Positions 20,501 through 26,500 of a stretch of DNA of 64,000 nucleotides are shown piece by piece. The DNA lies in assembly GCA_051294905.1 (NCBI GenBank), contig CM119372.1, forward strand, positions 13,082,001-13,146,000, read 5' to 3'. The stretch comes from Botryllus schlosseri (lineage: Eukaryota). A program made the translations under genes and the position numbers. A model generated the notes under the pieces. It was not told the DNA's origin. It saw only the letters and a list, made by a program, of their open reading frames with translations, and did no database searches. Each line of letters opens with the position of its first letter. Within the stretch, counting starts at the first letter, position 1.

Positions 20501-23500
20501 GGTTGGTTAAGGCTCAAATGTAGGTTAGGAGTACGGAACATGTCGAATTCGCTGTACACGTAGATTGCGGCAAAAAAGTCTCAAGATGATACTAAAAGGA
20601 AAAGCTTACCGAGATGGCGGATGTGTTGACGTCAAACTTTTTGAAAATGGCGAAAGCCTCTTCGAACAACTCGTTCTGAATGGCGATGTTCGCAATGTCG
20701 GGAGCGTCGTAGTTGTCCAGACGGTTGATGTACTCCATGACGCGGGTCTTGTCGGCTTTGATCGCGGTCAGGATCAGGAGATTCTGCAAGTTCCTGCAGG
20801 GCGGTACACAAGTATTTTTCAGTCGCCAAACATTCGAGCATACGACATAACGAATATCCACAGTGGAGCATGCGACACTTGAGCAGATGCAGTCAGTAAA
20901 GTAATTCTACGCCAGTGGGTTTTTGTATAACTCGAGCAGTAATGATATTAAACTCTTTCTACTTCAGTCTCGAAGGTAAAACTAGGAATAAAACACTTAC
21001 TTGAGAGTTGCTACTTTTACTAGTACTATAGTAGAATTTCACGATGTTGCTTTTAATTCTACTGGATCACCAACGTCGAATATGTTGACCACCTCTGCAC
21101 ATCGAGCATGTAACCTAATAACCCTGAAACTAACCCTAATCCTAACCTAACCTGAAAACTAACTGCCGCATGCTAGTGTGTCGTACATTCACATGTCGAC
21201 GAATGACATTATCCCGTCAGAAGTTCGGTTATACGTTGTATTTCATCGGGACCTGAATCACGCAGCTTACACACACAATGATTTGATTAGTACTTTAAAT
21301 TTGGATCTTCATCAAATTCGTTCGAAAACAAAAGATGGTGGAAGCTGCGAAATCGAGGATTCCCTTGATAGCGCCGTACGTATCATCACTCGGGAAAATA
21401 TCGGTGGAATCGTTCAAATATCACAAACCTGTGGTCGGAGAACATGGAGTTGTCGAGCACAATCTTCTCCAGTAACTCGATCAGTTCGTTGGGTAAATCG
21501 GCCGACATGAACGCTTTCACGGTGACGGAAACCTCATCTGGGTCCTGGGCTTCTGTGAGGGCAGTTTGTACCACCTGGAATCACGACAACGTTTCGATAC
21601 AAGGCCGGGACACGTCAACATCAGGACATTTACCTGATCGATCAGCTGTCTTCTGTAGACGTTAGTGTCCTCCAACACGACAGCCCACAGGTCGGTGTCC
21701 TTGCGACGGACCAGGTAGCGGGCCTCGGACTTGAAAAGCGAATTTTCGTTGCAGACCTGAAGGTATGAAATCACAAGCATCATAAGACATGATGGCAGAG
21801 ACAATTGCATTGGTTCTGTTGCTGCTACTGCACAAAATTCGACTCCATCCATCAAGTGCCAGGCTACTTAACATAATGCTAAACTGGTTACGAGACTGAC
21901 ATGCTCTAAAACTGGCACAAAGACTGTATCAGCGTAAACACATCATACGGATATAAGACATTAAAAAAATGGACCAGCCCACCATCAAATCGATCTTACC
22001 GCAATGAGCTCCTCGTCACATTGTCCGCGCTCGTAGGCTACGCAGGCCAGATGCGGGTCGCGTTTCTCGCAGTACTTTCCCACCACACGGCTGTCGTAGA
22101 ACGGATTCTCCTTCAGGAAGCGCTCCGGGTTGTTGTTAGCGTCGATGTAAATCTTTGCCAGGGCGTTGTGGGTGGCGGGCTCGTCAGAGCCTTCGTGCAC
22201 GCGGGATTCCAGCCACGGCAAAAGGAGTTTCAATCTGAACGGCGCCAAAAGGTTACAAGACGCATAGACACTTCACATACTTCTTGAAGACTTTTTCGTT
22301 CAGACCTATACATTTTGTGTTGTTGCTGGACCCCAATTGTGACCAAGTTCCAGATAATTTTTTCAATATCACAGATAGAGTTGTCGCCCAATATGGATCA
22401 AAATTCTCGTCAGAAGTTCGGTTATACGTTTTATTTCATCGGGACCTGAATAGATCGCCTTCCGCACAAATCAAGGTTCAGGTTTTTGTAATTATTTTCA
22501 AATTTGTTCAAAGTTGAAATGATGCCAAAATAGCGTCTGCGGAAGTCAAACTATAGAGTACTCCCTTGATAGCGCCGTACATATCATCATCCGAGAGGTT
22601 GCCCAACATTCAAGCACTTCAGCACACGAGAGTGACTTTATTATGGCCCCCGAACTAATCCTGACCTCGAAATTATCCCCCCCCAACCCTCAATTTGTTT
22701 TGACCAACGTGCTCAAAAGTAAGGACAAATGTTAGGAATAGGAGCACAGACTATATGACAACACTGATTACAGTGGTTCCAACAGTCTGCAGACTTCAGT
22801 TCAAAAACCCCGCACAAAACACGTACCGGTTGCGTTTTTCCACCTCGGCCACTAGCTCGTCCGTCGAGAACTGCCCTCTGACAACCATGATCAAACTCTT
22901 GATGACATCCTCAGCACAGTCAACATCCAGGAGGCCTCCGACCACCACAGGCAGACGAGACGGGTTCACCTGAATCGGTCGACTCAATCTTAGCTCTGCA
23001 AACGGGACTGCGCCACACAAATCTCACCTTTTGCACGTAGATCTCGATGTACTTTTGCAGGTCGTTTCGGTACAGGTACAGCACCAGGTCATGGACAAAG
23101 TCGTATCTGTCGCACACGATAATCAGCGGCAACTGGTCGGTGAGCTTGGCCTCTTTCAAAAAGTTTTTCACCTGTGAAGACGAAACGAGGTTAGAGACAA
23201 ATTCGAGAACGCCGGGAGAGATGTCGGACCTTGTCGGCGTCGTAGCAGTTGCTTTCACGACAAATGCGTTCGACCTCCTTGATCTGTCCGGTCTTGCAAG
23301 CGGCCTGGATGTACTTGAAGTGGACGTCGGCTTCCTGGCTGAAGTTGACGATGGATCCGAGGAAATAGAACAAACCTGCAAAAGCAGATGAGGTCAGTAA
23401 CGGAGTTTTCAGAGTGACTAGGCTTGCCTGCTTGCCGTTTACACTACTTCCACTTCTATTGTAACTACTAACGTTTTACATTTTTGTAGAAGGTAGTATT

Positions 23501-26500
23501 AGGACATGTTTGCATCACTTTTAAAAGTCAAAATTATCATAACTGGGCGAAATAGCCCCCCGTGTTGTAGAATCAGAATATGTTCTAGTGTTGCCGGTCG
23601 TTTGGTGTTAGTCGCGAACATGTACCCTTCATTTCTAGAGTAGCCACCTTCAATTACCTGCTGAAAGTTTGTCAGTATGTTACTTAACCACTGTTAACTT
23701 GATCTACTACTATCAGTGTAGTTTTGACACATCTTCTAATTGTAATTGTGTATAAATTGCCAGCATTCAGCGAACAGCTTCTCGAGTACCAAAGCCGGGA
23801 AGCTGCAGAAGCGGTAAAGCAACGGCGAGTAGCAGCACGGAATGAAAGTTCAAAAATCAGCATTAGAAAACATCAAAAAGTCAACATGGCGGGAAATGCT
23901 CACGAATCAACCACCACATTATTCCACGCCCTCGGGCTATCACAGTTACTGTTTACTAGTGCTTTAAAAATCAATTATCATGCAAAGATTGGGCCACCAA
24001 TGGATTCACCTTCGAAACTTTTGTATCCTTCAAACAAGTCAATCAGTGCCGTGGTGGAGAGCTGCTCGTGGTATTTCGTGGCGACTTGCACGCAGATTTG
24101 AAGATTTTGTCGGATGTTCGCAGTCAGCATTGCCTACAACGCACAAAAACTCTTTCAGTCTCCTTTTCAAAGGCGGCAAGTCAGGATGAGGCAGAAAAAT
24201 ATGCGTTATTCCCGTCAGAAGTTCGGTTATACGTTCTATTTCATCGGGACCTGAATAGTTTGGCTTGCACACAAATCGAGGCCCGTGTTTCTAGAATTAC
24301 TTTCAAATTTGTACAACATCAAAAATAGTGTCTGCGGAAGCCAAACTATAGAGTACTCCCTTGATAGCGCCGTACGTATCATCACCCGAGAGGTTGCTCA
24401 ACATTTGAGCATGTGACACTATCACAAATGACAGTTAAACGTGACAGTCCACCACACGAGAGCGTAACTTTATTACAACCTCCAAACTAATCCCGCCACC
24501 AAAATTATCCACTAATCCTAACAATCAGACTCTTATCCTAACCCAACCCTAAATGTTGCGCGAATCACACAACATACCTTCAGGCATTCAAGCGAGTCCT
24601 CAACGCTCAGGCTCCCAAAGAAATTGACGAGCCACTCGGGATTCAAAAGGTGGGTGTGTATGATCGCACGCTTGATGTCGTACAGGTCCGTGTAATGTTC
24701 CAGGGCGCGCTGGAGGAGCCCCGCCTTTTCGCACATGGAAGCAATGTGAGCCCGGTCGTAGTGGGTGAACATTTGGTTTCCAAGAATGGCATCAGCGACC
24801 TTGAAAAACGCACCGAATTAATGACGTCCGTCTCGCAAAAAACAGGCCGGCTACGCTCTACCTGTGGCGCGTGCATCAAATTCATTTCGAGCAATCGAGT
24901 CTGCAGCGGCCCTTCTGCGGGCCTGTTATTCTTGAGCGCGTCCAGAAGGAATGCGGTGCATTGCTGCACGAGATTTTGCTCCATAAAGACATCCACGATC
25001 TGAATCAATCGAAAACATATTCATATTGAAATAAACCAGGACATTTTTGGCCGACACCTGTAATCCTCAGCAACTAGTAGAGAATTCAGAAGAACTTGGT
25101 ATATTAACAGTAAGTGTCACCAAATTTGACATCACCGTCATCGAATAGTAGAGGCGAACCAATTGCTTGAGCTCTACCTACTATTTTTAGATCATACACA
25201 GTCAATATTAGAAGAACTGATTTATGGCATAGAATTTCAAGACAGCTATGAAAAGTGTGTTATAATAACATTTATTACCTTGAACTACTCTATATGTGTC
25301 TCCTATCGAGATTTACTAGCAGTGGTCAGATACCACCTCACGAAATATTATGAGATTGGCGAACCAGTTGAATTCAAAACTTGATGGCGAATGAAGACGT
25401 AAATAATCAGTATTAGGTTACTTTCTCCATGTAAAGTCGAAAAGCACAAAAATAAGATCCCTTACCTGAGACACGTCGGCTAACGGTTCATCGTCGGCAA
25501 CCAGCATCATGGCGAAAGCTTTTCCGGTTTCGGCGTTCACTCTCATTACGTTGCGCAGCAAGAAAACGTAGTCCGGCGTGTAGCCGACCTTTTTCGCGTA
25601 GAGCACGATCTTCTGAAACTGACCCGTCTCAGCAAAGCACATGATCACCTGCGACGAGAGAGATTTTAGTCACGCGAACAGTCACTTTCGAGCAGCGGCC
25701 AATCTTACTTTGTTCGGGATGTTGGCGCGGAGGTAGATCGAAAGCGCCAAGGTAGAATCCACCGGTTTCACCAGGTCTCCCAGTTCTTCCGAGCATTCCA
25801 ACTTTTCTTCCTTCAACCATTTCTCGATGAGCTGCTTCCTGCCTTGCTGCAACACCGGTCTGCACAGTTCCAGCGACTCGACTTTGTTCAATTTGTCCTG
25901 AAGTTCAAACAAATCGTGCAAAACCGAAACCGGCGCTTTCGGTACAATAATTATTATCGGACAGTTACCTGATCGAGCAAGATCCCAAAGTACTGCAGCA
26001 GTGGCGAAGTCTGTCCTGGCTGTGCAGGCACAGAAAGGAAACGCTGTATGGTCTGGGGCGTTCTCAAAATCCCCTAAACATAGAATATGTAACAATAAAA
26101 TCTGTAAGAAAACGCAGGAAACAATACTATCAAATAGCCAATCCCAACGTTCAGAAAGACCGATTCGTGCTTTGTTGTAAACACAGCCATTACATCACAC
26201 ATTCAATTCCCAATCGTATCAGAACCGGCGTTAATGATTAACCCGACTTGAATACAGATTTCTCGCGTCCTTATCGATATAGTTCTAAGAAACTAGCACC
26301 ATTTCCGACGTTTGAATCATCCGATCAGTTCGTGTTTTCTACAACGCATCTACGGCCAATACAAGTGCGTTCTATTTCAAAGCGATCAATTGCCAGGCGA
26401 GAGCGGTTTCTCGCAACGATTTCCTATCTGCATGCACGGCGGCAATCGGTGACAGGCACAGAACAGGTCGCTTGTTGTCATTTCTCTGCCGGCTCTTGTT

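Follow-up and report, generated by a model that had tools for sequence, protein, structure and literature searches.

The 64,000-nucleotide stretch of Botryllus schlosseri DNA considered here (GCA_051294905.1, contig CM119372.1, positions 13,082,001 to 13,146,000; hereafter the window) contains the gene for clathrin heavy chain (CLTC), three introns of which each carry a unit with the architecture of a box C/D RNA. With a probability of roughly 0.8, we read these units as three paralogous genes of one new family of box C/D small nucleolar RNAs (snoRNAs), lying in sense orientation in the CLTC introns of a stolidobranch-like ascidian. This reading rests on their anatomy, on the number of copies, on where the constraint falls and on the transcripts. 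The family is an orphan regarding canonical targets, since its D-target sequence is absent among the ribosomal RNAs (rRNAs) and small nuclear RNAs (snRNAs).

Tunicate snoRNAs are nearly uncatalogued. Homology surveys recover only 12–24 families in each species; the remaining ones may have been lost or may have diverged beyond recognition, a question that is still open (PMC5006418). As few tunicate snoRNAs are catalogued and most go unrecognised by Rfam, an unrecognised tunicate C/D family is to be expected (PMC5006418). The CLTC locus is a well-supported and structurally constrained family of this kind, missed by homology searches and without a canonical target. The family is new, and knowledge of the C/D class as such is unchanged. 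With three copies in one gene, all of them deletable, it offers a clean test case that could show the role of an orphan C/D ribonucleoprotein (RNP) in a non-vertebrate chordate, and in which the spacing to the 3′ splice site within one gene may decide which paralogue is expressed.

Anatomy and constraint of the three units

Open reading frames (ORFs) and a tblastn comparison with a full-length clathrin heavy chain place CLTC between about 28860 and 12350, read on the minus strand. Several of its introns are fixed by the joints of spliced contigs from two transcriptome runs, X10 and X28. All three units share the orientation of the host and occupy one intron each: copy 1 (184 nt) lies at 21212–21395, copy 2 (192 nt) at 22405–22596 and copy 3 (182 nt) at 24210–24391, all on the minus strand. 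According to the spliced-contig joints, the intron hosting copy 3 spans 24133–24576 (444 nt, GT..AG) and that hosting copy 2 spans 22235–22826 (592 nt). The intron of copy 1 extends over approximately 20793–21427 (about 635 nt), with its downstream boundary placed to within 2 nt by the loose end of an X10 contig. The exon count is compatible with intron numbers 13, 17 and 20, assuming that the start codon sits in a separate first exon. A preliminary description of this DNA had proposed three sense-oriented units of 182–192 nt with C/D architecture, and the spliced introns bear this out; its coordinates located all of them, with three of the six ends falling short by 2 nt.

The order of elements is the same throughout: a 5-nt stem arm, 2 nt, UGAUGA, the C′-like CGAUGA, CUGA and the second stem arm. 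Box C reads GUGAUGA or AUGAUGA at RNA nt 7–13 in every copy (UGAUGA at 21383–21388, 22584–22589 and 24379–24384 in copies 1 to 3), and box D, CUGA, stands 5 nt from each RNA 3′ end (21217–21220, 22410–22413 and 24215–24218). The ends are joined by a terminal stem of 5 bp, UCCCG/CGGGA in copy 1, UCUCG/CGAGA in copy 2 and UCUCG/CGGGA in copy 3, so that the third pair is C-G, U-A or U-G, a compensatory change. CGAUGA itself is invariant across the three copies.

Two blocks stand out by their conservation. Block 1, UGAUGAUA(C/U)GUACGGCGCUAUCAAGGGA, comprises 28 nt and differs among the copies by a single transition, and block 2, AUUCAGGUCCCGAUGAAAUA-N-AACGUAUAACCGAACUUCUGA, contains a single variable base. 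In copy 3, block 1 (24357–24384, minus strand) consists of box C and a further 22 nt (UACGUACGGCGCUAUCAAGGGA), a putative D′ antisense element that ends in GGGA. Block 2 (24215–24256, minus strand) runs from AUUCAGGUCCC through the C′-like CGAUGA, AAUA-N and the invariant 17-nt putative antisense element AACGUAUAACCGAACUU to box D. Aligning the copies gives an identity of 89–94% in the first 35 columns and 96–98% in the last 45, as opposed to just 42–72% in the central 110–120 columns. The intron flanks are essentially unalignable, except for about 61 nt of 5′ flank that copies 2 and 3 share at 77% identity. The earlier impression of two near-invariant blocks within diverging surroundings is therefore confirmed by these figures. 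The stretches of about 18–22 nt after box C and 17–21 nt before box D are single-stranded and strongly constrained by purifying selection; judged by their position and conservation, they are most likely antisense elements.

Between the blocks lies an internal hairpin domain (24251–24353 on the minus strand in copy 3), placed between the D′-like and C′ boxes, in which RNA nt 39–59 pair with nt 121–141 and the loop is variable. A consensus fold of the three copies by RNAalifold contains the terminal stem, a GGGA/UCCC pairing beside the C′-like box, and an internal helix of 16–18 bp that closes the variable centre. Across the three sequences 95.6% of the cells of this structure are paired and seven pairs are altered on both sides; one of 500 shuffles matched either covariation value, and pairing falls to 20–47% in controls with slid partners. 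As an example of compensation, copy 3 has AGUUUGGCUU/AAGCCAAACU where copy 1 has UUUCGCAGCUU/AAGCUGCGUGA. The test is limited to three sequences, and the direction of its result is clear. The covariation claimed earlier for the terminal stems thus holds, and the internal hairpin extends it. Together, the conserved end blocks and the compensated hairpin, set against flanks that are mostly unalignable, show purifying selection on a structured RNA.

The family is confined to this gene, and the match of architecture and blocks goes far beyond chance. BLASTN at E values up to 10 finds exactly three loci in the 495 Mb genome, and patterns of 21 nt and 28 nt taken from the blocks, with up to three mismatches, return the same three loci and no others. 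A covariance model built from the copies scores its own loci at 193.8 (copy 1), 210.5 (copy 2) and 221 bits (copy 3), that is, 194–221 bits, and its next match in the genome reaches 20.9 bits at an E value of 4.6. The flanks contain none of the hallmarks of a miniature inverted-repeat transposable element (MITE), a short interspersed nuclear element (SINE) or a retroposon: no target-site duplications, terminal inverted repeats or A-tails were found, and all copies lie in one gene and on one strand. Dispersal as a MITE or SINE, which the preliminary description had named as evidence against its reading, is thus not seen, with three loci in 495 Mb.

Transcripts, relatives and the case against

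Every sampled word of copy 3 is contained in six sequencing runs from two studies. In X28 a 246-nt contig (24172–24417, depth 4.3) corresponds to the copy 3 RNA plus 26–38 nt on each side, the mature ends not being readable from contigs; there, the remainder of the intron and the introns of copies 1 and 2 have zero depth, and the CLTC exons have depths of 22–25. The raw-read runs X23 and X32 have almost no coverage even on CLTC exons and are uninformative. Copy 3 alone lies at a spacing to the 3′ splice site that is optimal for vertebrate processing: its 3′ end is 77 nt from that site, against 170 nt for copy 2 and about 419 nt for copy 1, which begins 32 nt past its 5′ splice site. Hirose and Steitz (2001) reportedly found an optimum of about 70–80 nt for C/D snoRNAs in mammalian introns, a value with which copy 3 agrees.

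Several observations weigh against reading the units as a snoRNA family. The canonical D′ box (CUGA) is absent after block 1 in the three copies; the best candidate is GGGA, in which GA is kept. The folding energies of the single sequences are no better than those of shuffles (z = −0.3 to −1.6), and C/D RNAs commonly have such unremarkable energies. Neither copy 1 nor copy 2 is covered in the two transcriptomes examined, X10 and X28. In X10, a 466-nt contig (24106–24571, depth 8.4) spans the whole intron of copy 3, so part of the copy 3 signal may be unspliced pre-mRNA. Accumulation is accordingly shown for copy 3 alone, from contigs that perhaps derive in part from pre-mRNA. Of the three-fold dosage proposed earlier, the three copies are confirmed and the dosage is not, as only copy 3 is present in the RNA-seq contigs. 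Neither conserved block has a credible target among the rRNAs, ten small RNAs, the 5S unit or, as a long match, in the genome, and the RNA was not found in the orthologous CLTC introns (45–404 nt) of four tunicate-like relatives, either by the covariance model with its filters on and off or by approximate block patterns.

These relatives were sampled through exon-ORF searches, which led to CLTC loci on two long contigs of the European Nucleotide Archive (L075 and L076) and two short metagenome contigs (L074 and L077). The exon structure of CLTC is the same in the tunicate-like relatives reached. Two exact-pattern scans of metagenome contigs gave nothing, or bacterial chance matches. Since the third-codon identity of the relatives' CLTC to the window is just 0.41–0.56, they are too distant to date the family, and the absence tells no more than that this place in the introns is not an ancient one. 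Within the family, the centre has diverged by 28% between copies 2 and 3 and by more than 50% for copy 1; this divergence and the decayed flanks point to old duplications, and close relatives should therefore carry the family. The family is apparently lineage-restricted, as the preliminary description had suggested: it is absent from the orthologous introns of distant relatives, and this absence is the sole basis for the claim, in relatives too distant to date it.

A basic search for C/D elements in the CLTC loci of the relatives returned unconvincing candidates only. One orthologue of the copy 3 host intron, in a distant relative (L075:6505-6903), contains no snoRNA and in its place a tRNA-like segment, GGGTTCGATTCC, probably a SINE. 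In X10, a separate 307-nt contig at 23756–24037 (depth 16.6) runs from the exon at 24008–24037 into the first 252 nt of the 634-nt intron 23374–24007 and has adaptor at its end; it may reflect partial intron retention or an alternative 3′ end, and no Rfam family lies there.

In a rival reading, the locus would hold no RNA gene at all and the units would be a repeated intronic DNA element (a MITE, a SINE or a segmental duplication) or a cis-acting pre-mRNA structure in CLTC splicing. The 5′ flank shared by copies 2 and 3 fits this view, as do the degenerate TTAGGG-like tracts that adjoin all three copies and the X10 contig covering the complete copy 3 intron. It is nonetheless extremely improbable, given that just three copies exist, all in one gene and one orientation, and that they have neither poly(A) tails nor target-site duplications nor terminal inverted repeats. 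Only the C/D boxes, the terminal stems and the putative antisense blocks are conserved, the flanks having decayed; the helices are kept by compensatory change, and the X28 contig is limited to the RNA and about 30 nt around it. The tracts themselves are telomere-like on the gene-sense strand (TTAGGG or TTAGG), at 21100–21165, 22640–22700 and 24480–24560. Copy 1 has its tract on the 3′ side, whereas copies 2 and 3 have theirs on the 5′ side; the tracts may be a relic of the duplication.

The search for a target

If the snoRNA reading is correct, the established C/D snoRNP pathway suggests how the RNA would form. After splicing and debranching, exonucleases would trim the intron down to an RNP assembled with Snu13/15.5K, Nop58, Nop56 and fibrillarin on the kink-turn of box C, box D and the 5-bp stem. 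A second, internal protein site is plausible, made up of the C′-like CGAUGA and the degenerate D′ (GGGA), which the conserved 16–18 bp hairpin would join. Under the box D+5 rule, the nucleotide 2′-O-methylated through the 3′ element would be the second U of 5′-AAGUUCGGUUAUACGUU-3′ (perfect duplex: AAGUUCGG). The guide role proposed in the preliminary description keeps its boxes and its blocks in antisense positions; it lacks a canonical D′ box and a target. An orphan family of this kind might form a duplex, short or imperfect, with another RNA, or it might be an RNP that does not methylate.

Can the family be a known one in disguise? Nothing in the whole 64-kb window reaches a gathering threshold of Rfam, which settles the Rfam check that had been suggested. 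In permissive scans, the only family to appear is snR40 (RF01201), which matches the part from C′ box through guide to D box in all three copies at 15–18 bits (E 0.8–5). Such matches might indicate a diverged known rRNA-modifying family, for instance an snR40-type guide for the equivalent of yeast U898 in the large-subunit (LSU) rRNA, or another SNORD, with Rfam being too insensitive in fast-evolving tunicates, whose snoRNAs are known to evade homology searches (PMC5006418). This is very unlikely: the scores are far under the gathering threshold of 50 bits, and the three matches are not independent, because one conserved block is common to them. The LSU site equivalent to the yeast snR40 target reads CCUACCUGGGUAUAGGGG (CCUACCUGGGUAUAGG) here and is unpaired with the guide.

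The rRNA was searched more broadly in one full ribosomal DNA (rDNA) unit of this genome, retrieved from the located arrays and annotated, with 18S, 5.8S, 28S and spacers included. No segment of the conserved blocks finds at least 10 contiguous pairs in this unit, and the duplex energies of the blocks are no better than those of shuffled blocks. In a scan anchored on the boxes, no rRNA site pairs with D-guide positions 2–12, even when one mismatch is allowed, and this too speaks against a diverged rRNA guide. Two sets of candidates were discarded. Four alternative D′ registers gave three weak matches to rRNA, each with one mismatch or two G-U pairs and none at a plausible D′ position; block 1 forms 10 bp, two of them G-U, with LSU GAUGGCGCUG in the region equivalent to human A1511, a chance match that fits no D′ position.

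A pairing that is bipartite or imperfect would be in keeping with a specialised, non-methylating C/D RNP, such as a chaperone of pre-rRNA folding and processing or an acetylation guide in the manner of U13, snR4 and snR45, with further likeness to U8, U14, U22 and snR190. The length of 182–192 nt and the large internal hairpin resemble snR4, snR45 and snR190 (snR4 has 186 nt and snR45 172 nt), and the missing canonical D′ box, together with the invariance of both blocks, would also suit such a role. However, when the two blocks are paired bipartitely with the rDNA unit, the highest total is 15 bp, below the 17–19 bp reached by shuffled blocks, and the duplex energies are no better than those of shuffles. 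The CCG motifs in helices 34 and 45 of 18S were both located, and neither has flanking complementarity. On balance a specialised RNP of this type is an unlikely explanation.

Ten small RNAs (U1, U2, U4, U5, U6, U11, U12, U4atac, U6atac and U3) and the 5S repeat unit were taken from this genome, and on their sense strands nothing above noise was found. The best sense match to an snRNA, with U11 nt 13–23, has 11 bp including two G-U pairs and is within noise. The 5S rRNA genes are arrayed in tandem, with a period of 1041 nt, at G000:C9:3506461-3568482, and large tandem arrays also hold U1 and U5 (C2 and C6, and C10).

These results bear on the idea of a C/D small Cajal-body RNA (scaRNA) that guides methylation of a spliceosomal snRNA or of the trans-splicing spliced-leader (SL) RNA. 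In vertebrates, C/D scaRNAs carry long UG repeats as their Cajal-body signal, and the 3′ arm of the internal hairpin contains a short UGUGUG tract. A Ciona spliced-leader query gave chance-level matches only in this genome, which leaves some room for an SL RNA target. The tract, UGUGUG(UGU), has just 3–4 repeats and is incompletely conserved, no complementarity of at least 10 bp with at most one G-U pair exists to U1, U2, U4, U5, U6, U12, U4atac, U6atac or sense U11, and genome-wide searches with a wobble-tolerant 17-mer and exact 12- and 13-mers hit no small-RNA gene. A Cajal-body guide is therefore highly improbable.

Across the whole genome, the D target as a wobble-tolerant 17-mer matches the copies in antisense and one further site, equal to its control. 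Five other sites contain the exact 13-mer of this target, against 33 for the control, and none of the five lies in an Rfam family; the exact 12-mer of the D′ target gives chance matches and one dispersed repeat. Neither these searches nor the 21-nt and 28-nt patterns with up to three mismatches find a long complement of the blocks in the genome; tRNAs and mRNAs are covered here only by the genome-wide exact searches, and SL RNA, 7SK, the RNA of the signal recognition particle (SRP) and MRP RNA were not specifically screened. The CLTC host offers no match above noise as a target within the window. The preliminary description had called the RNA an orphan, and this judgement stands: no credible complement turned up in its own rRNA, in the ten small RNAs or as a long genomic match.

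A complement of 13 nt of block 1 is included in the dispersed repeat, which is present in at least 12 copies with AGAGGAGATAGCGCCGTACCAGGAATCA (L052–L055, L058–L060, L064–L066, L068 and L070, at position ~1500 each); it is probably a transposon family and the likeness a coincidence. A single site in the genome is complementary to 16 of the 17 bases of the D guide (AAGUUCGGUUAUACAUU, L044:1500-1516, equal to G000:C8:20144827-20144843), and about three such sites are expected by chance. It lies some 25 nt upstream of an ORF with a signal-peptide-like start followed by an acidic stretch. Block 1 also resembles an snRNA in the same sense: CGCUAUCAAGGGA (24357–24376 in the window, and also in copies 1 and 2) is identical at 12 of 13 positions to the conserved loop of U11 stem-loop III in this genome, CGCUAUCAAGAGA (L081:1501-1633, minus strand), and for copy 1 the identity extends to 15 of 17. 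This loop is thought to bind U11-35K, by analogy to U1-70K and stem-loop I of U1. In a shuffle test against all small RNAs the likeness reaches p ~0.09 and is probably due to chance.

Both coincidences have a place in a reading in which the units form a lineage-specific orphan C/D RNP whose invariant blocks serve something other than rRNA or snRNA methylation. The RNP might address a messenger or precursor RNA, for which the 16/17 complement could serve as a model, or it might act as a protein decoy through its likeness to the U11 loop. As both are at chance level, we consider this reading, with either option, unlikely. Each of the four rivals (a diverged known family, a chaperone or acetylation guide, a scaRNA, and a DNA repeat or splicing element) fell short in one direct test or more. 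A new snoRNA family without a canonical target, as set out at the beginning, is the account that we prefer.

The remainder of the window adds some context. Contig joints define further CLTC introns on the minus strand at 21573–21631, 21755–21997, 22966–23023, 23170–23227 and 23374–24007. Another CLTC intron houses a retrotransposon of the Ty3/Gypsy type, with gag-protease-reverse transcriptase and integrase ORFs (15309–18897, minus strand). Head-to-head with CLTC lies VPS11, a single ORF of 1022 amino acids (32267–35335, plus strand) with a C-terminal run of NPF motifs. Its nearest homologue is that of Styela clava (71% identity), followed by those of Phallusia, Ciona and Clavelina. In Ciona and Clavelina, VPS11 contains introns and does not adjoin CLTC, and synteny is thus no route to the CLTC orthologues.

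Comparison with known C/D RNAs

How does the CLTC family compare with C/D RNAs that have been characterised? Its weak likeness to the fungal guide snR40 (RF01201), which serves LSU U898 and G1271 of the small-subunit rRNA, extends from the C′ box over the D guide (GUAUA.CC.AA.UUCUGA) to the D box. The CLTC RNA differs from it in being twice as long, in scoring 15–18 bits where the gathering threshold is 50, and in having no complementarity to the LSU site.

The long specialised C/D snoRNAs, among them U13/SNORD13, snR4, snR45, U8, U22 and snR190, belong to a similar size class; like the CLTC family, they have a large structured domain in their interior and no canonical methylation target. Yet they have demonstrable (bipartite) complementarity to pre-rRNA, and for the CLTC family none was found. 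U8 and U13 moreover carry functional 5′ extensions before box C, whereas box C of the CLTC family starts at nt 8.

Closer in organisation are the orphans SNORD115 and SNORD116. They occur in tens of copies in an imprinted non-coding host, in contrast to the three copies in a housekeeping protein-coding gene described here, and there is no sequence similarity between the two. They likewise combine canonical boxes with conserved antisense-like elements that lack an rRNA or snRNA target, with multiple intronic copies and with lineage restriction.

The intronic C/D snoRNAs with several paralogues, such as U14 in three introns of mammalian hsc70 or the SNORD clusters of GAS5 and the SNHG genes, are usually 70–120 nt long, as opposed to the 182–192 nt of the CLTC family, in which a canonical D′ box is missing and neither an rRNA nor an snRNA can be recognised as the target. 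As a host, CLTC is not a gene of translation or the ribosome; literature searches turned up no CLTC-hosted snoRNA, in agreement with the preliminary description, which knew of none. Still, the likeness to these paralogous sets is extensive. The RNAs lie in sense orientation, one per intron, and have a terminal stem with C and D boxes; the best-expressed CLTC copy stands some 77 nt before the 3′ splice site, a spacing in keeping with the known sets, and in both cases the boxes and antisense blocks are kept and the rest drifts.

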